DNA from: Mantamonas sphyraenae STR306
Taxonomy: Eukaryota; Protista; CRuMs
Length of the DNA stretch: 64,000 nt
Assembly (NCBI GenBank): GCA_026936335.1
Contig: JAPMXV010000030.1
Coordinates: 186,001-250,000 of the forward strand
Direction: 5' to 3'
In this document: positions 30,683-60,800 of the stretch, in pieces
Layout of the letters: every line of letters begins with the position of its first letter
How positions within the stretch are numbered: the first letter of the stretch is position 1
Notes under the pieces: model-generated
Seen by the model: only the letters and a program-made list of their open reading frames with translations
What the model was told of the DNA's origin: nothing
Database searches by the model: none
Made by a program: the position numbers and the translations under genes

Positions 30683-30866
30683 CTGAGGGAATGCTGTTAG
30701 ACGGTGTTGATACGTTTGTATTGAGGTTCAGAGTGTGCCTGAGCCTGGAAGCGCGCATAGACGGCACGCAACCCGGCGACTCGACAATCGGCGCATCTCT
30801 TCACTGTCCAAGAGGACGCACACTTCCCAACAGAGTGTCATTGTGGTGCAACATGGACACCGCGGC

Positions 30867-30919
30867 ATGGCAGCCAAGATGAACCCACGCAGACCCGAGA
30901 CCTTTCCCCAATCCGATTC

Positions 30920-30950
<31 letters not shown>

Positions 30951-33900
30951 AAAGAAGAGAAAGAAGAAGGAGAAGAGGAAGCCTTGCCCTCGCCGCTGAT
31001 TGTGGCGGCGCGACGAGGCGACGTGAACGGGGTGAACGCGGCGCTGAGTGCTGGCGTGGATTCCGACCAACCGGACAAGTTTGGTTGGACGGCGTTGCTC
31101 CACGCAGCAGAGAAGAAGCACGTGTCCTGTGTGGTTGCGCTGCTTGACGCAGGTGCCAGTGTCGACGCCGGCCCTGGCAAACACGGCGCGGGCACAGCGC
31201 TGATCAGAGCAGCGATTCAAGGGGCGACGGCGTGCGTGGAGGCGCTCCTCACGGCAGGCGCAAGTGTGCATGCGCGAGACGATGATGATTGGACGGCGTT
31301 GCATGCAGCATCTGTGAGTGGCAGCGTGGACTGCGTCGAGGCGCTGGTGGCGGCGGGTGCGGATTTGGACGCCCAGTCCTGCAAGGGCATCACCCCGTTG
31401 ATGATGGCTGCACAGAGTGCGACAGACAAGAACGAGTATGAGTACGAGGAGGGTGAGCGTCCAGACGTGCCACTTGGTCATTTGCTGTGTGTGGACGCGT
31501 TGCTAGCTGCCGGAGCCGACGTGCGCGCGTGCTCCGACCAGTATGGGACGGTGCTGCACGTTGTGTCGACACATGGCCACGAAACGTGTTTGCGCAAGCT
31601 GTTGGCTGCTGGGGCAGACCCTGAGCAGCGGAACGCGCATGGTTGCACGGCGTTGCACCGTGCCGTAAAGTGCGAGGACACAGGCTGCCTACAGGCGCTG
31701 GTAGAGGCAGGTGCACAGTTGGAAGCAAAGGAGACGCGTCGCGGGTTTACACCGCTGGCGGTGGCAGCCAACCGGGGCAACGTGGCCGCTGTGAAGCTGT
31801 TGCTGCAGGCAGGAGCCGATGTGCACGCTGTGGGCGAGCATAAACACACAGTGCTGATGCTTGCGGCAGAAAAGGGTCACCGTGAATGTGTGCGTGTGCT
31901 TCTGGACGCTGGTGCAGCTGTCAATCAGGCCACCGACGCGGGCGGGACGCCGCTGCTCGTGGCCGCTCTCCATGGGTACTCGGACGTCATGGAGATGCTT
32001 CTGGCAGCAGGCGCCGACACGCAGGCACGCGACTCTGAACAGTGGACTGTGCTCCACTCGGCCGTGGTTGGCGGCAATGCAGCATGTGTGCGTGCGCTAG
32101 TGGACAGTGGCCGCGTCGACCTGGACGCAGTGACCGAAAAGAGCTGGACTGCGTTGCACAGCGCCGTACGCAACGGCCATGAGGACATGGTGTCCATGTT
32201 GCTGGATGCAGGCGCAGACGCGACGGTGAAAATGATCGAAGGGAACGACGCTCTCATGTTGGCCGCCAAATTCGGAAGAGTCGAGTGCATCCAGCTGCTG
32301 CTGCAAGCAGGCATGGACGTCGACGTACGCGGATTCCGCAACATGACCCCTCTGATTCGTGCGGTGCTGCACGGCCACGTAGAATGTGCACGCGTGCTGT
32401 TGGAGGCAGGCGCAGACGTAAACGCGGCAGACGAGTCGAAACGCACGCCACTGGTGCAGGCCGCGCATGAAGGACACGTCGAGTGCCTGCGTTTGATCCT
32501 ACAGGCAGGCGGTGAGGTGGACCAGCGGTTTGAACACGGTGGAACAGCGCTGCTGGTGGCTGGGCTCGCAGGCAACACCGAGTGTGTTCGCCTGCTCCTG
32601 GAGGCAGGCGCAGACGTGCACGTGCGCGACGACGACGGATGGACGCCGTTGCATTCGTCTGTGATCGGCGGCGATCCTGCGTGCATAGCGCTGCTCGCGG
32701 CCGCTGGCGCAGACGTCAATGCGCGTGACAATCGCCAAGCCACACCGGTGATGCTTGCTTCCGAAGCAGACAACGTCGCAGTGATGCACGCGTTGGTGGA
32801 TCTGGGTGGCGACATACACGCGCAGGACAGCACGGGGCGAACGGCGCTGGTGCAGGCCGCACAGCTCGAGAAACACGCAAATCTGGCCTTTCTGATCGAC
32901 GCAGGAGCAGGTGTGGACTGTTTGATGAGCAACCGCACGACGCCCGTGTTGATGGCCGCTCAAAACGGGCGCGTGGAGGTGTTGCGACTGCTGGTGGAAG
33001 CAGGCGCAAAACTGGACGAACGAACAACCAACGGACGCACAGCACTCATGCAGGCTGCCAAGAACGGACATTCCGCGTGTGTCAAACTCCTGTTGAGCGC
33101 GGGGGTGCAGGTGGACGCGGTGGAAGACATAGGAAGGTCGTCGCTGATGCAGGCGTCCTCGAAAGGCCACGCCGACGTGGTGGCGCTGCTGCTGGAGGCA
33201 GGCGCAGACAGAAATCTGGCAGGTTGCGACGGATGGACGCCGTTGATGCTGGCTGCCAACGGCGGATTTCGAGAGAGTGTGGAGCTGCTTCTGGCGGCGG
33301 GTGCGGATGTGCACGCAGCCAATGTGTTTGGCCGCACGGCGTTGATCCAAGCGGCACAAGGCGTTGGAGACAAGAGTTGCCTGCAGCTGCTTCTGGACGC
33401 TGGTGCCAGGGTGGACGTGGAGGCCGAGGGCGAGTGGCAACCGTTGATTGTGGCCGGCGACTGCGGCAATGCCCAAGGCATAGCGGCCCTTCTGGAAGCA
33501 GGGGCCAATGTGAATGTAGAGCCAGGCCACAGGAGTGCTCTGTTGCAGGCGGCGCACAACGGACACGCAGAGTGTGTAAAGGTTCTGCTGGAAGCTGGAG
33601 CCAGTCTGAAAGGCGCATTCAATGTCACGCCGCTGATGCAAGCGGCACAAGAGGGACATTTGGAGGTGGTCGAGCTGCTTCTGGATGCAGGGGACGATGC
33701 ACACGCCAAGAGCGACCTTGGACGAACGCCGCTGATCCAAGCGGCGCAGAACGGACACACCGACGTGGTGGCCAGGCTTCTCAAGGAAGGCGTGGACGTG
33801 AACGCAAGAACCAACTCGAATCTGACTGCGTTGGTGTCTGCGGCCGAGCGCGGCCACGAGGCGGTGTTGGATTTGCTGCTGGAGGCCGGCGCAGATGTGC

Positions 33901-36887
33901 AGGCTGCAGACGACATCGGATGGACAGCGGCCATGGTGGCGTCCCAAAACGGACACTTGGCTTGTTTGCACAAACTGATCCACGCGGGTGCAGATGTGCA
34001 CAGGGCAAACACGCGCGGGCGCACTGCGTTGATCCAGGCGTGTTCCAATGGCCGTGCTGATTGCTTGCGTGCATTGCTGGATGCTGGGGTGGATGCCACG
34101 CAGGTGGGTGCCGATATTGGCCCCGTGGCGCTTCTGGACGCGGCCAGGCAAGGGCATGAGGAATGTGTGCGTTTGCTGCTGGACGCAGGGGCGCCTGTGA
34201 ATGCGCCCGGGTTGATGAACCGTACGGCGCTGATGAACGCGGTGCACTCGGGAAAAGTCGCCTGCTTGCGAGCGTTGGTGGAGGCCGGAGCCGACGTGCA
34301 CGCAAAGGACAAGTTTGGACGGGACGGAATGAGCGTCGCGTGTGAACTCGGACTTGTGGAGTGCGCAGAGGTTTTGTTGGACGCAGGCGTAGAGGTGGAC
34401 ACAGAGCTCGTGGAAGGCCACACGGGGCTGATGATTGCGTCGCAGCATGGAAACGAGGCCTGTGTGAAGCTGTTTGTGGAGCGCGGGGCCGATGTGAACA
34501 GGCCCGGGCCGTTTGAGTTGACGGCGTTGATTCCAGCGGCGCAGAACGGCCACGGCGCATGTGTGCGTGTGTTGCTGGAGGCAGGGGCGAATGTGAACGC
34601 CATGTCGGACAGCAAGCGCAGTGCGCTGGTGCAAGCGTCGCAGAACGGACACGTGGAGTGTGTGCGCATGCTGCTGGACGCAGGTGCAGATGTGGAACGC
34701 GCAGACACGGTGGGGTGGACGTCGCTGATGCAGGCGGCCGTGCTCGGACACATAGAGTGTGTGCGCATGTTGCTGGACGCAGGGGCGGATCCAAACACAC
34801 GCGAGGACGTGGACAGGACGGCGCTGCTGATGGCGTCGGAACAGGGGTTTGAAGAGATCGTGGATGTTTTGCTGCGTGCAGGTGCGCAGGCGGATCTGAG
34901 CGACCGCAGCGGATGGTCGCCGTTGATGATGGCCGCAGACAAAGGCCACACCAGGTGCGTGGCACTGCTCTTGGGCGCAGAGGCATCGGTGCAGCAGAGC
35001 GACGAACACGGATGGACGGCACTGATGCAGGCGGCGCAAGAGGGACACGCAGAGTGTGTGCAGCTGCTGTTGGACGCAGGGGCACACGTAAACGTGGAGG
35101 CGAACGACGGACGCACGGCGCTGATCCAGGCGGCGCAGAACGGACACGATTCCTGCGTGCGTGCGCTGGCAAAGGGACATGCAGAGTTGGATCACCAGGG
35201 GCCGCACGGGCTGACGGCGTTGGCAGTGGCTGCACACAACGGGCATCCTGCGTGTGCGGCGGTGTTGATCGAGGCAGGAGCAGATGTGACACGCGAAGCG
35301 GAAGGCGGGTGGACGGCGCTGTCGATTGCAGCCAAGATGGGCCACACAGAGTGTGTGGAAGCGCTGGTGGCGGCCGGGGCGGACGTGAACCAGGAAGACG
35401 ACAGCGGGTGGACGTCGCTGATTCAAGCGTGCGGAAGCGGACATGACGCATGTGCGCGTGTGTTGCTGGACGCAGGCGCAGACGTGCATCACGTGACCCA
35501 TTCGGCACGAACGGCGCTGATGCAGGCGGCGCAGTGCGGCAGTGTGCCATGTGTGCACATGCTGCTGGACGCCGGCGCGGAGCTGGAGGTAGTGACAGAG
35601 AACGGGTGCACAGCTCTGTTGGTGGCGTCACGGATGGGCCAACACGAGTGTTTGAAAGCATTGGCGGACGCAGGCGCAAACGTGCACGTGGTGGACAGTG
35701 CAGGATGGACTGCGATTCAGCACGTGGCGCACAGCGGCAAGGTGGAGAGTGTGCAGGTGTTGCTGGACGCGGGCGTGGACGTGAACAACGCCAACGTGGC
35801 CGGGTGGACGGGACTGATGCTTGCCGCGCAGGAGGGCCATGCAGATTGTGTGGGGCTGCTCATTCAGGCAGGCGCAGAGGTGGATGTGATGTCGGACAAC
35901 CACCGCACGGCGTTGGTGCAGGCGGCACAGAACGGCCACACAGAGTGTGTGCAGCTGCTGTTGGGCGCAGGTGCAAAGGCGGATCTGGCCATGGGCGACG
36001 GGCGCTCTGCGCTGTCGATGGCCGCACACAACGGCGAGCTGGCGTGTGTGGAGCTGCTGTTGGGTGCAGGGGCAGATGCGAACCAAAAGACAAAACGAGG
36101 ACGCACGCCGCTGGCGCATGCGGCGTTGGGCGGCCATGAGAGCTGTGTGCGTGTGCTGTTGGACGCAGGGGCAGAGGTGGACAGCGCAGGCGAGGATCGC
36201 AAGACAGCGCTGGTCATGGCGTCGATGGGAGGGCACACAGAGGTTGTGAGGATGCTGTTGGAGGCAGGGGCGAATGTGAACACGGATTGCGGAGACGGGG
36301 GGCTCCCTGTGATGCTGGCGGCGATGAAGGGCCATGCAGAGTGTTTGCAGGTGCTGATCGATGCAGGCGGAGATGTGCACACGGCGGCGGTGGACGGGTG
36401 GACGCCGCTGACAATGGCGGCCGAGAACGGAGAGGTGGAGTGTGTGCGCAGACTGTTGGTGGCAGGGGCGTTTGTGGACGCAAGGACGAGCGGGCAGAGG
36501 ACGCCGTTGATCCAAGCCGCGCAGGAGGGCCATTTGTTGTGTGTGTTGCTGCTGTTGGAGGCAGGGGCGAATGTGGATGCGGCGGAGGAGGATGGGTGGA
36601 GCGCGCTGATGATGGCGGCGCAGAACGGGCATGCAGAGGTGGTGGCGGAGCTGGTGGAGGCCGGGGTGGATGTGGATGCACAGAATGAGCAGGGCTGGAC
36701 CGCGTTGATGATGGCCGCGCATGTGGGGGATATCGCGTGTGTGAGGGTGTTGTTGGGCGGAGGGGCGGATGTGCATGTGCAGGGGAGGGATGGGGAGGTT
36801 GCGGTGGGGGGTGCGGCGGGATTGGGGCATGCTGGGGTGGTGGAGGCGTTGGTGGAGGCGGGGGCGGATAGGAATGTGAGGGGTTGA
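30867..36887 (+). CDS. Giant ankyrin-repeat protein (~2,000 aa, roughly 58-60 repeats, no other domain)
   Basis: Continuous 33-aa repeats of the form GxTALxxAAxxGHxECVxxLLxAGAxV after an acidic N-terminus; intronless. Confidence 0.95.
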
Positions 36888-37035
36888 TGGGGATGGTGGT
36901 GATTAAGAGTGGTCAATGTAAACAGAGCACGTTCACGATGCGCTTGGTGATCCAGCGGCAATGTTTTCCAGGACACGCCCCTGCCTTGCGGGCCTGCCGA
37001 GGAATACACTGCAAGTCTTGCCTGGGCTACGGTCG

Positions 37036-38049
37036 ATGGCTGTTGAGGAGATGCAGGAGGCTGTCCAGGAACGCGAGCAGTTCCCCGCGTCCGTGGGCTT
37101 GTGGTCGGCTGGCGGCACCGCTACATTCAGCGGGATCGTCCTGTTGCACTCTTCTCTCTTTCAGGGGTTACAGGCCTTTGCCTCGTCGTATGTTCTATTG
37201 GGTGCCGTATCGAGCGTGCTTGTCACAAGAAAGGCTGAGGAAGTGGACAAGATCGTGCAGGGGTTGGCGGAGGTGATCAACACCGCCGACGCCATGTCTT
37301 TCAGCGCCTCCTTGGTGGCAAGCAGAGCTGCTCTGGGTCCACGGCATTCTTTATCAAGTGACAGTGAGCAGCTGATGAACGAGATGCACAAGAGGTTGCA
37401 TAAATCGCTGTCGAGTGTGGTGAGAGAACGCTTGTTGCGTCGCCAGCGAGCTGGAGGAGAGGATATAGGTGCTCTGTTGCCAAAGCCTGTGCTCGACACA
37501 TATGCAGGCAAGAGCAGCAAAGAGGCAACAGCTCGTGTTGAGGAACTCTGTTCAACGAGCACGACGAACGAAGGTGATGCGATCCGGGAGGTATGCGACG
37601 CTGCGGCGGAACACGTTCACAACTATGCTTGCCTGCATCTGGGGATGGCAGCAGCAGTACAAGCGCACTACCTTGCACATGCGCGACACCCTGAGCCCCC
37701 TACGCGCGTTCCTAAGCCGCTTCGGAACTTGTTGAACACGCTTTCCAGCAGCACGCGATCCAAGGACACGACACACCTGCCTTCGCTTGCGCGCAGCTTT
37801 GTTGACTTGTACGATACTTGCAGGGCACTCGAGGCGGACGTGAGGGAGAGTAAGGACTTGGGGAAACTGCACGAAGTCGGCGCTGCGTTGGTGCGTGTCC
37901 GCGATATCCACCACGATTTGTTGGTTGGACAACCAGCAAGGGTGCTCATTGAAGGAGCCACTGAGAGGAAAAAGCAGGCATTGCTGGACGCTGATCGCAT
38001 GCGCAGGAAATGTGCGATGGTGATCGCCACGGCGGAAGCAAACAAATGA
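37036..38049 (+). CDS. Hypothetical protein A: N-terminal 2-TM hairpin + helical domain
   Basis: Intronless ORF; two hydrophobic segments (VGLWSAGGTATFSGIVLL; AFASSYVLLGAVSSVLV); paralogous to the next ORF. Confidence 0.65.
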   Translation: MAVEEMQEAVQEREQFPASVGLWSAGGTATFSGIVLLHSSLFQGLQAFASSYVLLGAVSSVLVTRKAEEVDKIVQGLAEVINTADAMSFSASLVASRAALGPRHSLSSDSEQLMNEMHKRLHKSLSSVVRERLLRRQRAGGEDIGALLPKPVLDTYAGKSSKEATARVEELCSTSTTNEGDAIREVCDAAAEHVHNYACLHLGMAAAVQAHYLAHARHPEPPTRVPKPLRNLLNTLSSSTRSKDTTHLPSLARSFVDLYDTCRALEADVRESKDLGKLHEVGAALVRVRDIHHDLLVGQPARVLIEGATERKKQALLDADRMRRKCAMVIATAEANK

Positions 38050-39272
38050 CTTCTTCCTCCGAGGAAACGCAGTTGGAAGAAGATGATGCCATCCATATCA
38101 TCCCGTTGCAGATAGAGGTTGCCAAGGAGTTGAAGAGAAAGGTTTATGCACAGCACAGGCAGGTGCTGAAGGAGACACGCGAGTCAACACAGAAATGGGG
38201 AGGGCTGGCAGCTGCGGCGGCGTATGTGGCAACGCACAAGCAAAAGACTGTGGTCCAAGGGTTGGTGTCCGTAGCCACTGGGCTGGCTGTTTGGACAGGA
38301 CTGCGTGTGTGGAAAATGAGGGAGTTGGAACGGACGCGCAGGGAAGCGGAGGGCTGCCAGCGAATCCGCGCACATTCCATGGTGCTGATGGTGGATCTCA
38401 GTGTGTTGGCAAGCGATTGGACACCAGCTGCGGAGAGGAAGAAGGCTTTGGGGAACATTCGGGAGAGTTGGTGGGGAGATGATTCCCACGACTCTGCAGG
38501 GGTTGGAGAGAGTGGGAAACTCACGGCACAGTTTGCTCGATTCCGTGGCAGCAAGTGGTGGGTGGATGACACACCACACGGGAAACCAGGATTGGACCAA
38601 GTGAAGGCTGTTGAGGCGTCGATCATTGAACGCTGTAAGCTTTCCCCGGTTGAGCTGACAGAGGCAGAGCGGGAGGCAGTTCTGAAACACGCACAGTCTA
38701 GGACACTCGACTTGGTGGTGGCTGGTGACTGGATGGGCTCCGCACGACCCTTGTGCCACAAGGCAGCGGCCGTGATCAGGAAACAAGCTGGAAAACACTT
38801 GACCACCGCGCTCATGTACCAGCTGCAGGCTAAGGAGCTGGAGACGATGTACAGGACTTCCATGAACTCTCCGCTTATAGAAAGGGTGACGTCGTTCCAT
38901 TCGAAGGAGCTGCAGCCCGTGCAGGAGCTGCTGGAAGTGTCACTGCTCTTTGGCGAACACGCCACTCACAAACTCATTCAGCTCAGCTCGACGGCGTCCC
39001 AGGACTTTACCCTGCTCTATGACTTGTGCGTCAAGGTGGAGAGTCAGTTCAGCAAGGGCAGGAGTTGGGAGGACTTTTGGAAGGCTGAGAAGAAAGCGAG
39101 GGAGCTGGCGATCATTCATCGCGAGTTTTCGCACCGAGCTCCGGTCTCCACAGAGGACCCGCAGGAGGTGGCAAGCTCTGTGAGGAAGCTGGACAGGGAA
39201 CATGTCCGCTCCACGCTTACAGTGGCTGAATGGTGGAACGTCTCGGAGGACATGGACACGGAGGAAACGTGA
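38046..39272 (+). CDS. Hypothetical protein B: paralog of A, 2-TM + helical domain; ATG overlaps A's stop (ATGA)
   Basis: WGGLAAAAAYVA and VVQGLVSVATGLAVWTGL hydrophobic segments; shared motifs with A (FTLLYDLC vs FVDLYDTC; IIHREF vs DIHHDL). Confidence 0.65.
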   Translation: MTSSSEETQLEEDDAIHIIPLQIEVAKELKRKVYAQHRQVLKETRESTQKWGGLAAAAAYVATHKQKTVVQGLVSVATGLAVWTGLRVWKMRELERTRREAEGCQRIRAHSMVLMVDLSVLASDWTPAAERKKALGNIRESWWGDDSHDSAGVGESGKLTAQFARFRGSKWWVDDTPHGKPGLDQVKAVEASIIERCKLSPVELTEAEREAVLKHAQSRTLDLVVAGDWMGSARPLCHKAAAVIRKQAGKHLTTALMYQLQAKELETMYRTSMNSPLIERVTSFHSKELQPVQELLEVSLLFGEHATHKLIQLSSTASQDFTLLYDLCVKVESQFSKGRSWEDFWKAEKKARELAIIHREFSHRAPVSTEDPQEVASSVRKLDREHVRSTLTVAEWWNVSEDMDTEET

Positions 39273-39316
39273 ACTGAACGCGACGCGTGCGCCAACACAT
39301 CGACACGCACAGCCTC

Positions 39317-42067
39317 ATGAGCACATTGGACAGGAAGCGCGTGCGGAATGTGCGTGTGGGTCGTCAGGAGAATGAAGAGAATGAAATCGGTGGCAATGAC
39401 GAGTTGCAGGTGCCGGCGTTTGGGAGGGAAACGTCAAAGGCGGAGGTGGTGGAAAAGGTGCTCTCACTGGCCCGGGATGTCAGTGATGAGGTGCAACGTG
39501 GTCAGGATGAGGAGCGCGAGTTGGTGATGACACTGGTGAAGGAGTGTCTGGGCGATGGGGTGCGTTTTGGGGTGCACGGGAGCAAGGAACACGGAACACA
39601 CGTCCAGGGAGTGTCAGATGAGGACATATACGTGTACATGGGGGGGCAAGGACCTGCTGATGGTGCAGATACTGGGTTGGTGGAGGTGGTGGCTGTAGAC
39701 GGGCCACGGCTGGAAGGTGGCGGGCTGCCGAAGGAAACGCGATTGCTGAACACGGTGGACGGCGGCTGGTCGACGGCAGAGGAGGCAGTGCGACGCATGC
39801 GGGAGGATGTTTTGCCTTACTTGAAGGAGAAACTGCCGAACAAGAAAGTGCAGATGGGCCGGCGATGTCTGAAGGTTGAGGGAGTGGCACAAGACTACGA
39901 CTTGATCCCTGGAGCAGAGGTGGAGATCGAGATGGAGAGTGGAGAGAAAGAGAAGGCGGTGGTGCTACCGTATGGGAAGCCAGAAGTGCACGGATGGGAG
40001 CTGTACCGCCTGGACTACTATGAACGAGTGTTCACAGAGTTTGCGGATGCCCACGGTGAACGGGACGGGTTCATCGGAGTGCGTGGTGTGTGTCAGGTGG
40101 TGAAGTTTGTGGTGCGGATGTGGGAGAAGATGAAGCATCCGGGTGGGCTGGCAAACGGGGCGTTTATCGAGGCAGCTGTGCGGCATGTGGTGGCGGCAGC
40201 AGAGGCGAATGGTGAGAACGGTGTAGGGACAGTGGAGGTTGTGGAGCGGGTGGCTGGTCTGTTGGAGAAGGGATGGTTTGAGGATGAGGTGTCTGGAGAG
40301 GAGTGGAAGGTGAAGGTGAAGGATGGGGCGGTGTTGGAGGCGAGTCGGTTTTGGGAATGTGCGAAGATGACATACCAGGGGCTGGGAGCGCTGGGGGTGG
40401 ATTCCTTGCGGTACTGGCCTGATGACACAAGTGGAGTGCATGTGGCGGCGCGGTTTGGCAATGTGGGGCAGCTGGAAAGCTTGCTGGAAGCGTGTGGAAG
40501 CGACACGGAACGGCGGAAGCTTGTGAACGAAGCGGACAGGAATGGGTGGACACCGTTAGTACATGCGTCACAACACGGGAAGGTGGGTTGTGCTGAAGTG
40601 CTGATCAGCGCAGGTGCTGATGTGAACGGGTTGCAGTTGAATGATGAGCTAGCAGTGTCACCTCTCGCCGCGTCCCTGTACTGCGCCGGAAGGTGTTTGG
40701 ATGTGCTGCTGGCAGTGGGGGGAGTGGATGTGGATGCACAGTTGCCAATTGGGGCAACCCCACTGATGTTTGCATCTGTACTTGGAAACACAGACGCTGT
40801 GAAGAAGTTGATCGCTGCCGGGGCTTCAGTGGACAAGCACGGGAAGGATGAAGGGACTGCGTTGATTCAGGCAGCCACAAACGGACACGTGGGGTGCGTG
40901 ACGGCGCTGATTGAGGCAGGGGCGGATGTGGATGCTGCAGATGGGAAAGGGTGGTCTGCGTTGATCATGGCAGCACAGGGTGGACACGTGGAGTGCGTGG
41001 CAGCGCTGATTGACGCAGGGGCAGATGTGAATGCTGCGGCCGGGGAGGGATGGAAAGCGTTGATTGTTGCTTCACTCAACGGACACGTGAAGTGCGTAGC
41101 AGCGCTGATTGAGGCAGGGGCGGATGTAGAAACTGTGACTGAGGGAGGACTGACTGCATTGATCATTGCAGCACACACCGGGCACTTGGAGTGCGTGACA
41201 GCGCTGATTGAGGCCGGGGCGGAGGTAGAAACTGTGACTGAGGGAGGACGAACTGCGTTGATCATTGCAGCACACACCGGGCACTTGGAGTGCGTGACAG
41301 CGCTGATTGAGGCAGGAGCAGATGTGAATGCTGCGAGTGAGGGAGGAAGGACTGCGTTGATTCAGGCAGCACAGCAAGGACACGTGGAGTGCGTGGCTGC
41401 GCTGATTGAGGCAGGCGCGAATGTGAATGCTGCTACTGAGGATGGATTGACCGCGTTGATCATTGCAGCAGGGAACGGACACGTGGAGTGCGCGACAGCG
41501 CTGATTGAGACAGGGGCGGATGTGAGTGCTGCGATTGAGGGAGGACAGACTGCATTTATCATTGCAGCACAGCAAGGACACGTGGAGTGCGTGGCAGCGC
41601 TGATTGAGGCCGGGGCGGATGCAAACACTGCGACTGAGGATGGGTTGACCGTGTTGATCATGGCAGTACAGAAGGGACACGACGCCATTGTCTCTCTCCT
41701 CCTGTCCTCAGGTGCAGATCCAAAGATGCCTGGCCCAATGGGCTTCACCGCACTTCACTTTGCTGCCCTCGTTGGCCACGCGAGCACCATCAAACTTCTC
41801 CTCTCCAATGGCGCAGACCCAACAGCATCTGCCGCCGGTCTCACCCCCCTACACGTCGCAACCGCCTCCAACCACCCCGAATGTGCCGCCCTCCTCCGCC
41901 CCGACCCCACCAACCCCAACAACTGGTCCTCCATCAACCTCACCACCGCTGACCTCAAAGCCCTCCGTCGTGGCGGCATCGACGGCCTCCTCATGCACCT
42001 CGAGCTCTCCAACCAACACGCCAAGATCAAGCAAGTCAACACCCTCGTTACCCAAAACAACTGGTGA
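39317..42067 (+). CDS. cGAS/DncV-like (CD-NTase/SMODS-type) nucleotidyltransferase fused to ~15 ankyrin repeats
   Basis: Pol-beta fold motif VHGSKEHGTHVQGVSDEDIYV (GS at 39578-39583, DxD at 39617-39625); GRRCLKV..DYDLIPG (third Asp ~39899); helical lobe VCQVVKF..GAFIEAAV. Ankyrin repeats from ~40420. Confidence 0.8.
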   Translation: MSTLDRKRVRNVRVGRQENEENEIGGNDELQVPAFGRETSKAEVVEKVLSLARDVSDEVQRGQDEERELVMTLVKECLGDGVRFGVHGSKEHGTHVQGVSDEDIYVYMGGQGPADGADTGLVEVVAVDGPRLEGGGLPKETRLLNTVDGGWSTAEEAVRRMREDVLPYLKEKLPNKKVQMGRRCLKVEGVAQDYDLIPGAEVEIEMESGEKEKAVVLPYGKPEVHGWELYRLDYYERVFTEFADAHGERDGFIGVRGVCQVVKFVVRMWEKMKHPGGLANGAFIEAAVRHVVAAAEANGENGVGTVEVVERVAGLLEKGWFEDEVSGEEWKVKVKDGAVLEASRFWECAKMTYQGLGALGVDSLRYWPDDTSGVHVAARFGNVGQLESLLEACGSDTERRKLVNEADRNGWTPLVHASQHGKVGCAEVLISAGADVNGLQLNDELAVSPLAASLYCAGRCLDVLLAVGGVDVDAQLPIGATPLMFASVLGNTDAVKKLIAAGASVDKHGKDEGTALIQAATNGHVGCVTALIEAGADVDAADGKGWSALIMAAQGGHVECVAALIDAGADVNAAAGEGWKALIVASLNGHVKCVAALIEAGADVETVTEGGLTALIIAAHTGHLECVTALIEAGAEVETVTEGGRTALIIAAHTGHLECVTALIEAGADVNAASEGGRTALIQAAQQGHVECVAALIEAGANVNAATEDGLTALIIAAGNGHVECATALIETGADVSAAIEGGQTAFIIAAQQGHVECVAALIEAGADANTATEDGLTVLIMAVQKGHDAIVSLLLSSGADPKMPGPMGFTALHFAALVGHASTIKLLLSNGADPTASAAGLTPLHVATASNHPECAALLRPDPTNPNNWSSINLTTADLKALRRGGIDGLLMHLELSNQHAKIKQVNTLVTQNNW
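40850..41690 (+). repeat. Near-identical 99-bp tandem repeats encoding ankyrin units
   Basis: For example 41102-41200 vs 41201-41299 differ at only a handful of bases; about 8 units. Confidence 0.9.
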
Positions 42068-42100
42068 CCAATACACTCTTTTCACCCCCACCCACTCACC

Positions 42101-45100
42101 TCACCACCCCCACTGCCTCTCCTCACTCTTCCTCACCGCCGCCGACCCTGCCTGCGTCACACTCTCCGTAAACACCGCGTGCACCTTGATCCACGGCGTC
42201 ACCCTCGTCCTGTTCCTCGACGCCACCACCGCCATCACCACCACACTCACCGTCATCGCACACACAAACCCCAGCCCCAACGCCACCTCTGCCCCGCTCC
42301 CCTCCACCGTCCCATCCAGCAGCATCCACGACACCACCGACGACCACAACGCCACCCCGAGCAGCCCCAGCCGCAGCACATTCAACCACGCCAGCGCAGA
42401 CGGACGCCTCAGCGCAAGCACCACCATCGCCACACACACCGCCGTGTGTGCCGTCTGAAACACAACCACATACTGCCCTCCGCCAAAGTACTCCACCACC
42501 GCCGCAAGCACAAACTTCAGCATCCCTCCACCCACAATCGTCGACGTCCGGAACCGCATGTCCAGCTTCCAGCTCCGCTTCTCGCTCCACACAATCCCCG
42601 TCAGCACTGCCATCGGCATATACACCAGAATGGCCAAGAACGCCACGCTCGCCAGCGCCAGATGTGTCCCCTCCCAGCACACCATCGTCGGCTCTGCATC
42701 CAGCACCGCCACGCCATTCCCGCCCCACGTGCACACCACTCCGCGCAGCAGTCCACGCGACACGGGCAACAACAGCACCGCGTTCACTTCTGCCAGCCCA
42801 TTCCACGTGTCCACCTCCCGTCCACACACACGGTACCGCCCGTGCAGCTCCAGCAGCGCACGCAACACAAACGCCGCCGTCACTGCAATCCAAAACGTCG
42901 CCCCCAGCGGCACATGCACATCAAACGCCACCAAATCCAGCGCAAACACGCCCAGCGCCTGCCGCACCTCCACACTCCACCTCGGCGTCGTCTCCACCGT
43001 CAGCTGCATCAGCTGCGCCACCTCCACACACACCGCCCCCAGCGCAGCCCAATTCGACACCGACCGCCACTTCACACGCCGCACAGGCAGCCGTATCACA
43101 CGGTCCAGCTCGCAGAACCGCACCGCCACAAGCACCGCCGTGCCCAGCAGCAGAAAGAACAGCAGCGTGATCACAAACGACAGCATCGGCCCCTGCCCAC
43201 TCAACAACACAAGCGCAATCGCAAGCGCCACAAACACCACATCCATCCCCACCAGCGTCTGTCTGCTCGGCGTACGCCCCAGAAACCAAAACGGGATCAC
43301 CAGCGACCGCGGACGGTGGTCGTCTGTGTGCACCGTCAGCTGTGGCGGAAGCGTAGCCATCTCCACAGGCCGTTTCACCATGGCATTGTGCCGCAGATCC
43401 AGCTCCGTCAACGCAAGGTGCTCGTTGCTACGGATCCCAGCCACCAGTTCCCGCACAGCCTGCCCGTCCAGCGCATTGTGCGACAGATCCAACGACCGCA
43501 GACTGCGGTTGTGCTCCAGACTCTTGGCCAGCACACGCGCACCCGTTGCACGGATCTCGTTGTGAGCAAGCACAAGCTCTCGCAGACGCTGCGTCACCTT
43601 GAGCGCGTGCTGAAAGTGCTCCATCGCCTCGCACGTCAGCCTGTTGTGTGACAGATCCACCTGCGTCAGGCTTCCGCTGTCCGAAAAGATGTCCTTCAGC
43701 ACCGTTGCGCTTGCGTCCCCGAGCAGGTTTCCGCTCAGGTTCAGCGTACGCACGCTCTTGTTTGTACGCAGCACATCCGCAAGCAGCGACAGACGCACCA
43801 TGTTTGTGTGCTTCGTGTGCCGCAGCGCACCTCGCTCCGTCTCCATACGACGCATCCGCGCGCGTTCCAACGCATCCAACCCCGCCTGCATCGCCACTCC
43901 CTTCACTCCAGCCCCTTCCTCCGACCCATCCGTCGTCGTTTCCACCTCTCCGTCCTCCCCAGCCGTCCGATGCGCAGCCAGCCGCTCCTGCGCCTGCGAA
44001 ATGCTCGTCCGCCGCATGTCCAGCCCAGCCATCGCCGCTGCAAGCGACGAGTCCATCCGATCGCGCGTCCCCGTACGTGTGGCACGCGCTCGTGGACGCT
44101 CTCGATCGCGTCCACGCCGCCGCCCCGGTCTTCCTCTCGCCTCCACTTCCTCTCCTTTTCCCTCTTTCCCCTCCTCCCCGTCTTCTCCTACCTCCTCCTC
44201 TTCCTCCTCCTCCTCCCCTTCCTTCTCCTTCCCGCCCCGTACCTCCACGCTGTAGTCCAAATCGGTCACTTCGCCACGTCGCAGACTGCCCACATCGACA
44301 ATCTCCCCTGGACCCAACACCACCTTTTCCAGACACGTGTGCTCAGCCACCGCCTTGCCCAGTGCACGCAGCTCTGTGCATGCCTCCAACAGACGCAGGC
44401 CAACCATCCTCAGTTCCACCAGCGACTGGTTCGCCTCCAACGCCGTGGCCAGCACACCACACGCAAGCGGCCCAAAGTTGGTGTGCGACACATCCAAATG
44501 CGTCACTGCACACATCCCACTCGCCAGGAAGCCAAACAGTCCGTGTGCTTTGTCTCCGTGCAGACACTCGCCACGCACAGACACACGCGTCACCTGCGGA
44601 CTGTTTGCAAGCACCTCGGCCAGAAACGTCATCTCGTGCACCGTCATCACGCCCTCCTCGTCACGTATGTCGAATGCGTCTGTGTCCCTGCGCACCAACC
44701 CAAGCACATTCAGCCACACGCTGTCCACACGCACCTGCTCCAGCGTGTTGGACGCAAGCAGGCCACGCGCAAGCTCACATGCAATGTCTGCGCTCATGCC
44801 AGGGTTCCCGCCCACGTCCAAGCGCACCAGCGCCGTCTGCTCCGCCACCACCGCACACACCTGCCTGAGCTGCTTGTGTGTCAGCCCAAGCTGAGCCAAC
44901 CCAAGCTCACGCAAAGGCAGCGCAGACACAGCTGTGCACAGCTCCGACACATTCCGTGTGCTCAGTGCGTTGTAGCCCACGTCCAGCGTGTGCAGCGATT
45001 CGCACATCTCCACCCCGCTCACAAGCACCTCTCCAGACGCCTCGCCCAGCTCATTGTGGTCCACACGCAGGCTCTCCAGGCGGCCTCTGTGCAGCAGTTG

Positions 45101-48100
45101 CCGCAGATGCGTCACCAGTCCTCCGTCGCTGATGCTGTTCTTGCCCAGATCCACATGGGTGATGTGCGTCTGGTCCTGCAGCGATTCCAGCAGCACCAGC
45201 GCGCCCACGTCGCCCACGCCGTTCTCACGCAGACGCACTTGCTTCAAGTAGGCACACGCAGGCGCCAGGGCGGCCACAAAAACGCAGCCGCGGTCGCCCA
45301 GCTCCGCGCCGTCCAGCACAATCTCGTCCGACAGACTGTTGACAATCTGCGCCACAGGGATCGGCACGCGATCCGACGTCAGATACAGCGCATCCACCTT
45401 GCACTTGCGTGCAGCCAGCAGCTGGCCGGCCGTGTGTGCCGCGTCCAGCCCAAATGGGTTGTCGTGCACGTCCAACACACGCAACGCACGCACGCCCGCC
45501 ACACTCTGCGCCAGACGCACCATGCCCTTGTTTTCAATCTCGTTGCCTGCAAGATACACCTCGTGCAGTCTATCACACGTCTGCAACACGAGCGCAATCG
45601 CTTCGGCCCCCTTGTCTCGCAGCAGGTTGTTGCTCAGGTCCAACTTGGTCACCGTCTCGTTGTGGAACAGGGCGCCTGCAAGCAGCCTTGCGCTCTGGTA
45701 GTCCACAAAGTTGTCCTTCAGACGCACCGTGTGCACCTTTGTGCCTCCTTCCCCGCTCAGCACACGTGCGAGCATGGTCACCTCGGCCGCATTCACGTCC
45801 AGTGCCGTCCAGTCCAGCACACCACCCTTGACCTGTGTCGACGTGTGCAACGCCTGCAGGTTGATTTGCACCGACATGCGCAGCTGCAGCAGCGACCTGT
45901 TTTGCAGCAGCGATTGCGAAAGCGCAATCCCCGTCGCAAGGCCCAGGTCCATCCCGCTCAGGTCCAGAAGCTGCAACATGGCATTGTCGCCCATTGCCTG
46001 GCCAATCACCTGTCCGCCCGAATCGTTCAGTAGGTTGTTGCTCAGATCCAGCGCAACCAGCGTGCTGTTCTCTCTCAGCAGTTCCGCCACGTGCGCCGCA
46101 CCCACACTCGTGATTTGGTTGTTCGCCAGCACCAGCGTGTGTACAGACGCACACGTTTTTTCACACACCCACCACCACCGCAAGGTCTGCGTTGTGCACA
46201 CTCGTGCCGCTCAGGTCCACCACAGGCGACGCCCCCGAACGCCACGCCGCCGGCGTCACGTCGCAGTTCAGCGACACAAGCTCCAACGTACTGTTGCGTT
46301 CCACACACTGCTTCCACGCAAGGCCCACCTCGTCGCTGCGACACCGCGGGTTGTTGCGCAGAATCACCCTCCGTGTCACTGTGTTGGACTCCATCGCATG
46401 CGCCAATGCAACCAGCCCGCCCTCGTGGATGTCGTTGTGGCTCAGGTCCACAGACAACAGCGCCAGTTGGTTGTCCGCCAGCATCGTCGCAAGCACCTGT
46501 GCACCGCGGTCGTCCAGCCGGCATCCCGCCATCTTCAGACCGTTCACCGCGTGCAGATTCCCCATGCGCAGCAGACCACACAAGAACGCCACCTCGTTGG
46601 CACGTATCTTTTCGGGGCAAAACACATCCAGAGGCTGCGGCTTTGTCAGGCCACGCAGGAACGCAAGGTCGTAGTCTGCCTTCCACGAAACCAGCCGCAC
46701 CGACGTCTTCTGGCCCAGCTCACATCCCAGCAACCACGCAAGTCCTTCGCTCACCTTGTGGCACCCTCCCAGGTGCACTTCTGTCAGCGTGTAGTTGTTT
46801 GCCAGCGCACGCACCAGCTCGTGGCCCAGGTGGTCGTCCACCACCGCCTCGCTCCCGTCCGTATTGTACAATCCGGCCACCGCCTCGGCACCCAGGTCCA
46901 GCTCTGTGGTGCTGTTGCTGGCCACGTCTGCCACCGCTGCCTCCAAGTATCCGTCACTGTGCTCCTGCTTCGGCCCGCTCAGCGTAATCTCAAACAGTTT
47001 CGGCCGCAGTTCGCCAAACTGCCGCAACTGCCGCTGCAACTCATGCTCCAATTGCCGCTGCTTCTTTTCCAGCTCTTCCAGCGACCCGCTGCTCGCGTCC
47101 ATGTGACGCCCCAGCTTCCCATGCACGTGTCGCAGCAGTGCAGGGAACGAGTCGTGCGCATACTCGTTCTGCTTGAGCTCAATCACCAGCGGACGGCGCA
47201 CTACTTCGTCCGTGTCCCGTCGTTCTGCTGCCCCATGCGATCTCTGTACACTCGACGATCGCTTTGCGGCCACGCTCGCTCCTCGCCTCGGCGGCGACCG
47301 TTGTCCTCCCTCCCCGCTCACGTCACTCCGGTCGCTTCTGTCGCTCCGATCGCTTCCGTGAGACAACACCATGTCCAGCGTGGCCGACGGCGGCGGCGCC
47401 CCGGGACTCTTCAACCCGTGAGCACTCGGAGGCGGCGGTTTGCTGATCAGCGACGCTTTGCGACGTGCCTGCTGCTTCCGCATCGTCACCACCTTGGCCG
47501 ACGACACAGCCTGCAACGGTGACCGTGGCTCAGGCACACCCATTGCCTGTGCTTGCAGGTGGCTGCTGTTGCCTCCTCCTGCAGCCAGTGTCTTGCGGCG
47601 TCCTGGCGACTGCAGCCCATCCATCCCTGCCCCTGCGCCGCCCACATCCCTGTGCGACGCACTGCGTGTCAGGTTCTGCTTCCGCTGCATCATCATGTCC
47701 TTGATGTCCTTGGCCGTCTTGACATTGCGCAGCACAGACGGCAGGCTCGGCGGGGGCGGACGTGCAAGTCCTCCAGCAGACGCCACGCTGCTGCTGCCTG
47801 CGTTGCTGCTTGCATGCGACGAGGATGCACGTCGCAGACTTGTGCGTCCCTGAGGCAAAAGGTTCTCGTCCAGGCTCTGGGTGGGCATCAGCAGGTCTGG
47901 AATCGGCGTGCTTGCCTCCCGTTTGCTGCTGAACGGATTGTCCGCCTCGCTGCGACGTGTTGCAGGCGTGCTCTCGCCCGTCTCTCCACCTTCCCTGCTT
48001 CCCCGCGGACTGAACCGCTTGGGCGCCATCATCATGGGTGACACCGAACGCGCAGACGTCTCTGTGGGCGCCTGGTCGTCGTCGCTCGGCGCAGAGACCG

Positions 48101-57864: not shown

Positions 57865-60800
57865 TCACGCGTCCACATTCGCCGGTTCCTTCCCATCCAA
57901 CCACCGCTGCCACACCTTGGTCAGCCCACGCTCAAACGCACGCACATACCCTTCCGTGTCAAACAGTGGGTTGTCTGCGGTGCGCTTCGACAGCATCTCT
58001 CGACGCAACGCCTGCAACGCCTCCGTGTCCGTCGCCAGCTTCACTGCAAGCTCCTCGTACTCCTCCAGATTCGACACAATCGTCGACGTCACACCATAGC
58101 TCTTCAGCAAGCTCGTGGCCACTCGACTGCTCATGCTCTCCATCGGCACCGTGATCATCGGCGTTCCGGCCCACAGAATGTCCGTGCCTGTCGTGTGCGC
58201 ATTGTACAGTCGCGTGTCCAACACAAGGTCCGGCAGTGCGCTACGCTCGCAAAACTCCTCGTAATCCACCACGTCTGTAAACACCAGCCGCTCGCGCCCA
58301 ATCCCTCGCTTTTGCGCTTCCGCCACAATCCGCGGCGTGCTGTACGGTGGGAATCGCAGCAGCCACAGCACAGAGTTGGGCACTCTCTTCAGGATGTTCA
58401 TCCACACCGTAAACAGGCCCGGATCTGACTTGTACAGCTGGTTAAAGTTGCCAAAAATGAACTTGTCGGTTGGCAACCCCAGCGCGGCCCGCGCCGCACT
58501 CACCGCACTCCTGTTTCCTGCGTACCGTTCCACAACCTCGCTCACATGGCCGTGCGTCTCTGCGTGGCTGTTCACCTGGTAGCAATGCGGCATGTACAGC
58601 TGTTTCTCCGAATACCATCGTGAACTCGCCTCGGGCACAATCACGCGGTCGCTCACCATGTAGTCGATGAACGACGCACCCGTCGTCCCCGGGTACCCCA
58701 GCTTGCTCATCATCACAGGTGCAGGGCGCAAAGACAGCATCTCCAGCTTCCCGCCCTTGCTGTGCCCATTCATCTCAATCAGAATGTCCACTCCGTCGTC
58801 CACAATCTTCTTGGCAGCCTCGTAGTGAGCCAGCTGGCTAATGTCCACCCACGCGTCCACAGACTCTTCGATGCGCTTTTGTACAGAGCTTCCGTCTCGC
58901 GGAAACACAGCATACACATACACCTCGAATCGTGTCCGGTCGTGCTTCCCAAACATCGCCTGAACAAATCGTCCCACGGGGTGTGACCCCAGGTCGCTGC
59001 TCACGTACCCGATGCGGATGCGTCCTCCACGCGCGCCCTGTTGGGTCGCACGCTTGGTCCGGTCAAATGTGAACGAAGGAAACCCTGCACTCTCCATCAA
59101 ACGCGCACTCTGTTCCGCATACCGCTTGTGAATCAGCAGAATCTCGTCCATGCCCATCGGATATGCAAACGTGTGGAACGGACGCACAGACGGGCGCTCC
59201 CCGCGGCTCTCTTGCTCCGCAATCATCGTGTGCATCTCCTCAAACAGCTCTTCTCGCGCCGTCCAGTTGCATACCTGCTGCAGGCAATGCACATAATCTC
59301 CAAACGCCTCGGGAAACTTTGGACGCAGTCTCAACGCATTCTCGTACTCCACAATCGCCTCGTCCATCCGATTGGCCTTTTCCAGCAGCTCCGCAAGGTT
59401 CTTGTACACCTCTGGAAACTCCCGCAGCGAGATGGCACGCCGATACGCACGCACTGCCTCCTCCTCCATTCCCTTGTCCATCAACACCGTCCCATAGTTG
59501 GACCACGACTCGGGGCTGTTCACGTTGATCTTCAGCGCTGCCTCGTATGCAGCCGCCGCCCCGTCCAAATCTCCAATGTCCTTCAGCACCGTGCCCAGGT
59601 CGTTTTGAGCTGCGGCCAGCCCAGGCTTCAGCGCAACCGACTTGCGCAGCAGCTCCATCGCCTCTTTGTACCTGTTCATGTCTGCGTACAGACTGCCCAG
59701 CGAATGGTACGCCTCTGCCAATTGCGGATTGGCCTCCAATGCCTTCTTGAACCCTTCCTCCGCCTCAGCCACCTTTCCTATTTGCTTCAGCATCAACGCA
59801 CGGTTGTACTGTGCCTCGGGATACCGCGGATTCAGCTCCACGGCACGATCGTACGCCACCAACGCCTCCTTGTCCCTGCCCAGCGCACGTAGCTGCACTC
59901 CCAGCTCGCTATGCAACGCTGGGTTGTTCGGTTCCACCTGAATCCCCTTCCGTAACGTCCTCAGCGCTCCCTGCGGGTCGTACCGAGCCTGCGCCAGCGC
60001 CAGGTTGTAGTACCCGTTTGCAAACCGCGGATCCAACTCCAGCGCCATCCCATAGTACTGTGCGGCCTTGCGATACCGTCCTGTGTTGAAGTACACCGTC
60101 GCCAGATTGTTGCTAGCCTGCATGAACCCAGGCTGAAGTTGCACCGCCCGCAGCAGCACTCGTTCCGCCGTCTCCCACTCCCGGATGTGGTCCAGACACT
60201 GGCCCAGGTTCACAAGCATCTCTGCCATGTTTGGCGCCAGTCTGCTGCCTTCCTTCAACTGTGTTCGTGTGTGTGTGTGCGTGTCCTCGCCCCTGATCAG
60301 CATTCCCTCCGTTTTCCTTTCTCGTCACCCTCCCCTCAGCCCCAACCTACCGGCGCCACAGCAGCCTCCAGCTGCCCCATGCTCATCATGCAGTATCCGA
60401 TGTTAAACAGGTACATCCCATTCGTAGGCGACCGCCTGTACAGCAGCGCAAAGCAGTGCAGCGCTTCACCAAACTGCCGTCCGTCTCGAAGCCTCTCTGC
60501 GCGTCGTCTGAACTCCTCACACCTGTGTCAGCCCTCGCTCCCTCTGTCACACCAGCCTCTGCCACACGCCACCTCCCCCCTCCCCCTCCTCTCCACGTAC
60601 GCCAGCTCAGCTTCTTCCTTCACTTGCCACGCCGGACACAGTGTCGGCTTCGTATCTGCCTCAAACACGAGCTTCTGCGCCTCAAACAGGGGCTTTTGAT
60701 TGTCCATGGCCGCCTGCTGTGCCGCCAGCGCCTCTGCACGCTGGGCTTCCGCCGCATTCCGCTTTGCTCGTGCTTCTTCGCGCTTCGCTTTGGCCTTGGC

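Follow-up and report, generated by a model that had tools for sequence, protein, structure and literature searches.

A very divergent, probably CD-NTase-like nucleotidyltransferase fused to ankyrin repeats in the protist Mantamonas sphyraenae

We analysed a stretch of 64,000 nucleotides of the Mantamonas sphyraenae STR306 genome (assembly GCA_026936335.1, contig JAPMXV010000030.1, positions 186,001 to 250,000 of the forward strand; hereafter the window). It encodes a protein in which a nucleotidyltransferase-like N-terminal domain (N-domain) is joined to an ankyrin array; we refer to the gene as NTase-Ank. Mantamonas belongs to CRuMs, a branch near the base of Amorphea. NTase-Ank occupies a single uninterrupted open reading frame (ORF) on the plus strand (39317..42067, stop included) that encodes 916 amino acids from the first ATG. 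The frame is open from position 39278, its first listed start is a GTG at 39287, the first ATG follows at 39317 and the stop lies at 42065-42067. Residue numbers are counted here from the GTG, and the ATG-based number is obtained by subtracting 10. Judging from its sequence, the protein is probably a new enzyme of CD-NTase-like type, very divergent and equipped with a repeat sensor.

Two motifs quoted in the initial annotation of this DNA are both present in the NTase-Ank frame: HGSKEHGTHVQGVSDEDI at 39575-39628 (residues 97-114), and GRRCLKV-EGVAQ-DYDLIPGAE at 39857-39919 (residues 191-211). The single ORF at 39287-42067 joins both of them to the ankyrin array without a break. The first motif holds G98-S99 of the hG[GS] motif (39578..39583) and D111-E112-D113 (39617..39625), the predicted first pair of carboxylates that bind metal ([DE]x[DE]), while the second holds D205-L-I-P208 (39899..39910), with the predicted third catalytic aspartate on a 'DhhP' strand. 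Eleven residues separate G98-S99 from D111-E-D113-I, a spacing that satisfies the Pol-beta-like pattern hG[GS]x9-13[DE]h[DE]h, with D205 as the third carboxylate. The succession of GSxxxGT..DxD and then DhhP was recovered in one of 200,000 composition-preserving shuffles, and no other ORF in the six-frame translation of the window has it (577 ORFs, 96,638 residues); chance is thus far from accounting for the pair.

Alignments and predicted secondary structure delimit a CD-NTase-like nucleotidyltransferase domain at residues ~48-370 (39428..40396, plus strand), which comprises N-terminal helices, a catalytic N-lobe and a C-lobe predicted to contain four helices. A Gly/Asp-rich insertion of ~39 amino acids (residues 121-159, 39647..39763) separates the DxD strand from the helix that follows it and is modelled with a predicted local distance difference test score (pLDDT) below 50; the corresponding positions are a gap in all 40 aligned bacterial SMODS proteins. 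The C-terminal part of the protein is built of tandem 33-residue ANK repeats (residues ~380-870, 40424..41896). There are ~14-15 of these, 13 of which are scored by Pfam as Ank stretches (Ank_2, E 2.2e-94; Ank, E 4.1e-88). In the core of the array (40854..41681), Tandem Repeats Finder detects 8.4 tandem copies of a 99-bp (33-amino-acid) unit with 79% matching, and eight of the repeats appear to be recent, near-identical copies. The protein ends in a tail of 56 amino acids (41897..42064) without a recognised domain.

The gene is present as a single copy in the genome (25,061,354 bases in 78 contigs). The published Mantamonas sphyraenae assembly is described as 25.06 Mb in 78 primary contigs with 59.19% GC (PMC10492846). 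The window has a G+C content of ~60% and holds ordinary nuclear genes, for example a TPR-GT41 O-GlcNAc transferase; NTase-Ank itself lies in nuclear, host-like sequence. The ORF of the O-GlcNAc transferase (57865-60303, minus strand) is intact and encodes 812 amino acids with TPR repeats and a Glyco_transf_41 domain (E 2.2e-125).

Short-read contigs from three public DNA runs match the NTase-Ank sequence and contain a second version of it, at about half the depth and with 6-9% nucleotide divergence. The divergent stretch covers ~38.0-41.9 kb of the window (38038-41900) and spans both NTase-Ank and the ORF immediately upstream (ORF2, described below), and the flanks on either side (36848-38067 and 41876-42400) show zero to one differences. 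The simplest explanation for this second version is a diploid genome in which the two alleles have diverged strongly here. Its indels measure 3, 6 and 3 nt, all multiples of three, and one divergent-allele contig of 1,415 nt crosses the boundary between the N-domain and the repeats with the frame intact. Codon position 3 accounts for 15 of the 24 listed allele differences in the N-domain. The 15 listed amino-acid changes between the alleles are mostly conservative, eight of them fall in the predicted loop at residues 121-159, and the D113 codon differs only by a synonymous change. Because the indels are in frame, the differences are biased towards the third codon position and the replacements are mostly conservative, we conclude that the N-domain is coding. 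Selection on it is purifying without being strong, and the fusion to the repeats is kept in both alleles. The repeats differ in a further respect in the short-read data: one contig from the run labelled X3 skips 500 nt at 40865-41366 and has 5 other letters instead, a net difference of 495 nt, or five 99-bp ankyrin units. This difference is either repeat-number variation or a repeat collapse in the short-read assembly.

By ordinary sequence searches the N-domain is an orphan. HMMER with the 404-amino-acid domain found no match at E values up to 0.001 among 1.84 billion protein cluster representatives, and word-index protein searches with the whole protein and with the domain returned nothing. 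The sequences of the PDB contain no match to the N-domain (the best was an esterase at E 0.58), NCBIfam gave only a chance match to GrpE (E 0.078), tblastn had no match in plasmids or in metagenome or viral contigs, and an exact-product look-up of the protein was blank. The models for terminal uridylyltransferases (TUTases) and non-canonical poly(A) polymerases (PF22600 and PF03828) do not match at the NTase-Ank locus. PF22600, the MTPAP-like/TUTase central domain, is found at only four loci of the genome (E 3.9e-26 to 2.9e-3, three of the four above the Pfam cut-off). These loci lie on contigs C55, C41, C54 and C58 (L160-L163), and we used them as comparators.

More sensitive comparisons point to one group of enzymes. 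Among the 5,027 models of PADLOC, the only ones to match the N-domain are three oligonucleotide-cyclase models (E 4.8e-4, 6.2e-3 and 0.019), and these matches are collinear, with the GS-DxD region and the region from the helix to the third aspartate in the right order. In the feature comparison of the ESM Atlas, CBASS/SMODS cyclases take all ten top places among the neighbours that have a family (score 0.94, 182 shared features). Recognition for the N-domain was 2620, above the mark of 2300, and the neighbouring ORF2, which serves as an internal negative control, had zero matches.

We then aligned 36 bacterial SMODS proteins (Actinomycetota, Pseudomonadota and two further genomes) and compared this alignment with the N-domain using hhalign. 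The score was 43.9 (P 1.8e-5) over 195 collinear columns (residues 81-336), with all motifs in register. Sixty shuffled sequences gave a mean of 14.7 (standard deviation 2.8, maximum 25.0) and the reversed sequence gave 15.6, which places the N-domain at a z of ~10. The scores against minimal NTP_transf_2 enzymes (12.4), AbiEii toxins (16.0) and the organism's own four TUTase-like proteins (16.3) are noise. The N-lobe alone scored 38.9 (shuffles 13.5 +/- 2.9). In a MAFFT alignment, G98, S99, D111 and D113 occupy the four invariant SMODS columns, T104 and P208 fall in the two columns that are at least 90% conserved, and D205 falls on the third catalytic aspartate; both MAFFT and hhalign pair D205-L-I-P208 with the SMODS D[IV]VP. 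The form GSxxx.T..DxD is found in 33 of the 36 SMODS proteins, in 9 of 28 NTP_transf_2 proteins and in none of 30 AbiEii or four TUTase proteins. A hidden Markov model (HMM) made from the SMODS alignment ranks the NTase-Ank ORF first among the 577 ORFs of the window (E 0.0057, against 1.1 for the next) and aligns to residues 87-339. The best single match, a Streptomyces-type SMODS family, is 33% identical over 91 columns, yet when this best-matching Streptomyces subfamily is aligned in depth its score (32.2) is lower than that of the broad alignment (43.9).

These comparisons support a Pol-beta-type nucleotidyltransferase domain whose nearest detectable relatives are CD-NTase/SMODS proteins and not TUTases or minimal nucleotidyltransferases. 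The likeness to CD-NTases is real but remote. The initial annotation had ranked the CD-NTase likeness above that to TUTases, and this ranking holds (43.9 for SMODS against 16.3 for the TUTases of the same organism, and cyclases only in PADLOC and ESM). It had also called the domain bacterial-style CD-NTase/SMODS. The closest detectable relatives are indeed SMODS cyclases, but the term bacterial-style is not supported: the protein has no Pfam SMODS match, none of the 1.84 billion representatives, bacterial or other, resembles it, and the score is at the level of the superfamily.

Beyond kinship, the interpretation that we favour, and consider somewhat better than an even prospect, is a divergent, active enzyme of the CD-NTase/OAS type that would make an oligonucleotide signal and be gated by its ankyrin array. 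Its main rival, which we think possible though clearly less probable, is a Pol-beta nucleotidyltransferase that is no signal synthase of the CD-NTase type, for instance a lineage-specific RNA-tailing enzyme or a protein or small-molecule nucleotidyltransferase recruited to a partner by the ankyrins, in which the likeness to SMODS reflects the common catalytic core. A series of results weighs against the signalling enzyme, and most of them favour this rival. In a leave-one-out calibration, the 36 true SMODS members scored 80.9-339 (median 229), so that every member reached at least 81, and the 43.9 of the query lies below the range of the family. Single sequences of other nucleotidyltransferase families reached up to 43.0 (NTP_transf_2) and 50.3 (TUTase) against the same SMODS alignment. 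Since 43.9 is within the reach of other families and far below that of members, the similarity of the query is at the level of the superfamily and not of the family. The C-lobe alone scored 15.0, not significantly above shuffles (12.4 +/- 1.9); an R/KxW...hE pattern in this lobe is aligned by both hhalign and MAFFT, with a score for the lobe alone that is near that of shuffles. Pfam has no match to the first 404 residues, whole or as four sub-segments, at E values up to 10. The SMODS model PF18144 matches neither the protein nor the six-frame genome, the NTP_transf_2 model PF01909 does not match the protein, and Mab-21 (PF03281) and OAS1_C (PF10421) are found neither on the protein nor in the genome, where the control genomes were silent too. 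The STING_LBD and SAVED domains of known cyclic-nucleotide receptors were likewise not found in the genome, in a search in which no positive control responded. The contest of profiles covered SMODS, NTP_transf_2, AbiEii and the organism's own TUTases. AlphaFold2 run without an alignment gave a model with a pLDDT of 37, which is unusable.

Against the rival stand several observations: SMODS is the only family among those tested that gives a signal (16.3 for TUTases and 12.4 for NTP_transf_2); PADLOC matches only cyclases and the best ESM neighbours are all CBASS cyclases; and the GSxxxGT and DhhP motifs of the SMODS/OAS type are present. We retain the active CD-NTase/OAS-type enzyme as the preferred reading and a non-signalling transferase as its principal competitor.

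Structure prediction guided by the SMODS alignment is compatible with the proposed fold. With this alignment, AlphaFold2 reached a pLDDT of 73.4 and a predicted template modelling score (pTM) of 0.72, with values of 85-97 in the catalytic core and the 39-residue insertion disordered. The best PDB structures retrieved with this model by Foldseek are CdnE, DncV, CdnD, cGLR and cGAS (TM 0.5-0.6). Because the SMODS alignment drove the prediction, these values speak for compatibility with the fold only and are no independent evidence, which is a further point on the cautious side. The order of helices and strands agrees between the alignment-free and the alignment-driven models, and four helices follow the core in both. 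This shared order in the unbiased run lends a small amount of independent support.

The origin of the domain is a separate question. The initial annotation had described it as horizontally derived, and this found no support: there is no bacterial homologue among the 1.84 billion representatives, and the codon composition is host-like. The G+C content at the three codon positions of the N-domain is 0.70/0.39/0.67, compared with 0.61/0.41/0.74 for the O-GlcNAc transferase of the host. That a eukaryotic repeat array was joined to a bacterial CD-NTase gained through recent horizontal transfer is, in our view, quite improbable. The attraction of this reading is that CBASS cyclases of bacteria are the closest relatives that can be detected, with a Streptomyces-type SMODS family as the best single match (33% over 91 columns), and that eukaryotes are known to have acquired bacterial CD-NTases (eSMODS, cGLR; PMC10732462). 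However, HMMER, the word-index searches and tblastn of plasmid, metagenome and viral contigs were all blank, the protein has neither PF18144 nor PF01909, unlike the published eSMODS, and its codon-position G+C resembles that of host genes. Moreover, the libraries are mostly bacterial, so that a bacterial nearest relative is expected anyway. A recent bacterial origin has no support. The domain has no placement in a tree, because it is represented by one sequence and has no detectable homologue.

The weakest explanation, that the N-terminal region is no enzyme and that the motifs arose by chance in an orphan linker of helices and strands preceding the ankyrin part, would account for the lack of Pfam, NCBIfam and PDB sequence matches, for the lack of a homologue in searches that included 1.84 billion representatives and for the low-confidence alignment-free AlphaFold model, but it is hardly credible given that the motif pair arose in one of 200,000 shuffles, that the hhalign score lies at a z of ~10 from shuffles, that three independent kinds of method (PADLOC, ESM and hhalign) agree on the family and that the frame is under purifying selection.

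NTase-Ank is the last of four adjacent ORFs on the plus strand. The first is a giant ORF with ~60 ankyrin repeats (30735-36887), followed by ORF1 (36961 to 38049) and ORF2 (38046..39272, 408 amino acids), each of which has a hydrophobic N-terminal segment. The stop codon TGA of ORF1 and the start codon ATG of ORF2 share bases in the string ATGA (38046-38049), and the stop of ORF2 lies 44 nt before the NTase-Ank ATG at 39317. This spacing of ORF1, ORF2 and NTase-Ank could reflect tight packing, a polycistron or the exons of one gene. Neither Pfam nor PADLOC assigns a family to ORF1 or ORF2, and ORF2 is present as a single copy in the genome. We considered whether ORF1 and ORF2 are paralogues, which is not supported (BLASTP E 0.26). 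An operon-like reading is weakened by the general compactness of the genome, as illustrated by the stop-to-stop distance of 33 nt between NTase-Ank and a convergent leucine-rich repeat (LRR) gene. This gene, of the RI type, lies on the minus strand (42101-46201) and ends 33 nt from the end of NTase-Ank (42065-42103); with the stops 33 nt apart, the 3' ends of the two genes must overlap or nearly touch. Bridges of 44-53 nt with in-frame GT..AG ends exist at all three junctions of the four adjacent ORFs. In this GC-rich DNA, bridges bounded by arbitrarily chosen dinucleotides occur just as often (700-1,000 control matches across the window), so that they are evidence neither for nor against short introns that join the four ORFs.

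The preferred reading, a signal-making enzyme of the CD-NTase/OAS type, can be laid out as a mechanism. The protein would be cytosolic and in two parts, with the N-terminal ~320 residues forming a nucleotidyltransferase of the Pol-beta fold. In this domain D111, D113 and D205 would hold two metal ions, and the enzyme would join nucleoside triphosphates. Because G98-S99, D111, D113 and D205 are all kept, catalysis is most likely retained. If it resembles CD-NTases, OAS and cGLRs in this respect, the product would be an oligonucleotide signal, either cyclic or linear. The ~14 ankyrin repeats would most likely bind a protein or another ligand and thereby switch the enzyme on or off, and a sensor or autoinhibitory role for them is plausible by comparison with related fusions. 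The near-identical 33-residue repeats, together with the divergent alleles, would fit a fast-evolving recognition module. What the sequence shows is the architecture, the intact motifs, the remote likeness to CD-NTases, purifying selection on the frame and a nuclear, host-like setting; enzymatic activity, the nature of the product, regulation by the repeats and any part in immunity are inferred.

Several known systems share parts of this design. With the CD-NTases of bacterial CBASS (PF18144; CdnE, CdnD and DncV), the Mantamonas protein has in common the GSxxxGT...DxD and DhhP motifs in the same order and with the same spacing, a helix that separates strand two from strand three, a conserved Trp beyond the strand of the third aspartate and a predicted helical C-lobe with the R/KxW...hE pattern. 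It differs from them in scoring below every family threshold and far under the members, in the 39-amino-acid insertion after the DxD strand, in the lack of an operon partner with a known effector domain and in being a eukaryotic, nuclear-encoded protein fused to ankyrin repeats.

Ankyrin repeats also occur in the OAS/RNase L pathway. OAS is itself a member of the nucleotidyltransferase superfamily, with GSxxxGT and DhhP-type motifs, and RNase L reads the product of OAS through an ankyrin-repeat domain. Given that RNase L does so, an ankyrin array can serve as a nucleotide sensor. In Mantamonas, however, a single polypeptide combines the putative synthase with the ankyrin repeats, and the protein has no OAS1_C match and no kinase or RNase domain.

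A parallel in architecture is found among animal cGLRs, a minority of which are fused to ankyrin or TPR repeats, for example in the coral Stylophora pistillata, and the repeats of these fusions have been interpreted as modules for interaction with proteins or ligands (Li et al., bioRxiv 10.1101/2023.02.22.529553). The Mantamonas protein resembles the cGLR-ankyrin fusions in combining a cGAS-like nucleotidyltransferase core with ankyrin repeats. The animal proteins are members of the Mab-21/cGLR family, whereas the Mantamonas protein comes from CRuMs and has no Mab-21 match, and on these grounds its fusion is most likely independent of theirs. Since animal cGLR-ankyrin fusions have already been described, the architecture is of a known kind, here in a distant lineage and with an N-domain that escapes every family model. 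The initial annotation had proposed a second-messenger synthase with a built-in repeat sensor or autoinhibitory domain; the fusion to an ankyrin array within one ORF is confirmed, while the design is not new.

A further comparison is with the eSMODS, which are named after PF18144 as their top hmmscan domain and all of which also carry PF01909 (Culbertson and Levin 2023, PMC10732462). Reported from Amoebozoa, choanoflagellates, ancyromonads and a sponge, they fall within clade D of the bacterial enzymes (PMC10732462). Like them, NTase-Ank encodes a protist protein with bacterial SMODS-type CD-NTases as its nearest relatives; unlike them, it has neither PF18144 nor PF01909, and it has no position in a tree.

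A bolder extension of the signalling interpretation, which we regard as unlikely, is that NTase-Ank represents an unseen lineage of eukaryotic CD-NTase-like enzymes, either old or fast-evolving, that the HMM-based censuses of eukaryotic cGAS/OAS/SMODS proteins have missed. The ankyrin array would then be a pattern-recognition module, speculatively one that senses what the enzyme itself makes, in the manner of RNase L. With its strong polymorphism (alleles 6-9% apart), its recently formed ankyrin repeats and the adjacent orphan membrane-type ORFs, the locus would form a self-contained innate-immune module in a lineage close to the base of Amorphea.

Surveys of cGAS-like enzymes in eukaryotes depend on family HMMs and have reported such enzymes from only a few groups of protists. 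The NTase-Ank protein escapes such family HMMs, yet its catalytic signature is intact and its nearest relatives are CBASS cyclases. If it is another kind of nucleotidyltransferase, it would be an ordinary lineage-specific fusion. If it is active as a CD-NTase-like enzyme, it would provide an intron-free, tractable construct for finding the ligand of an ankyrin-gated CD-NTase. Nucleotide second-messenger signalling in protists would then be broader and more diverged than the censuses show, and the combination of a synthase with a repeat sensor would have arisen independently in CRuMs, close to the inferred root of Amorphea.

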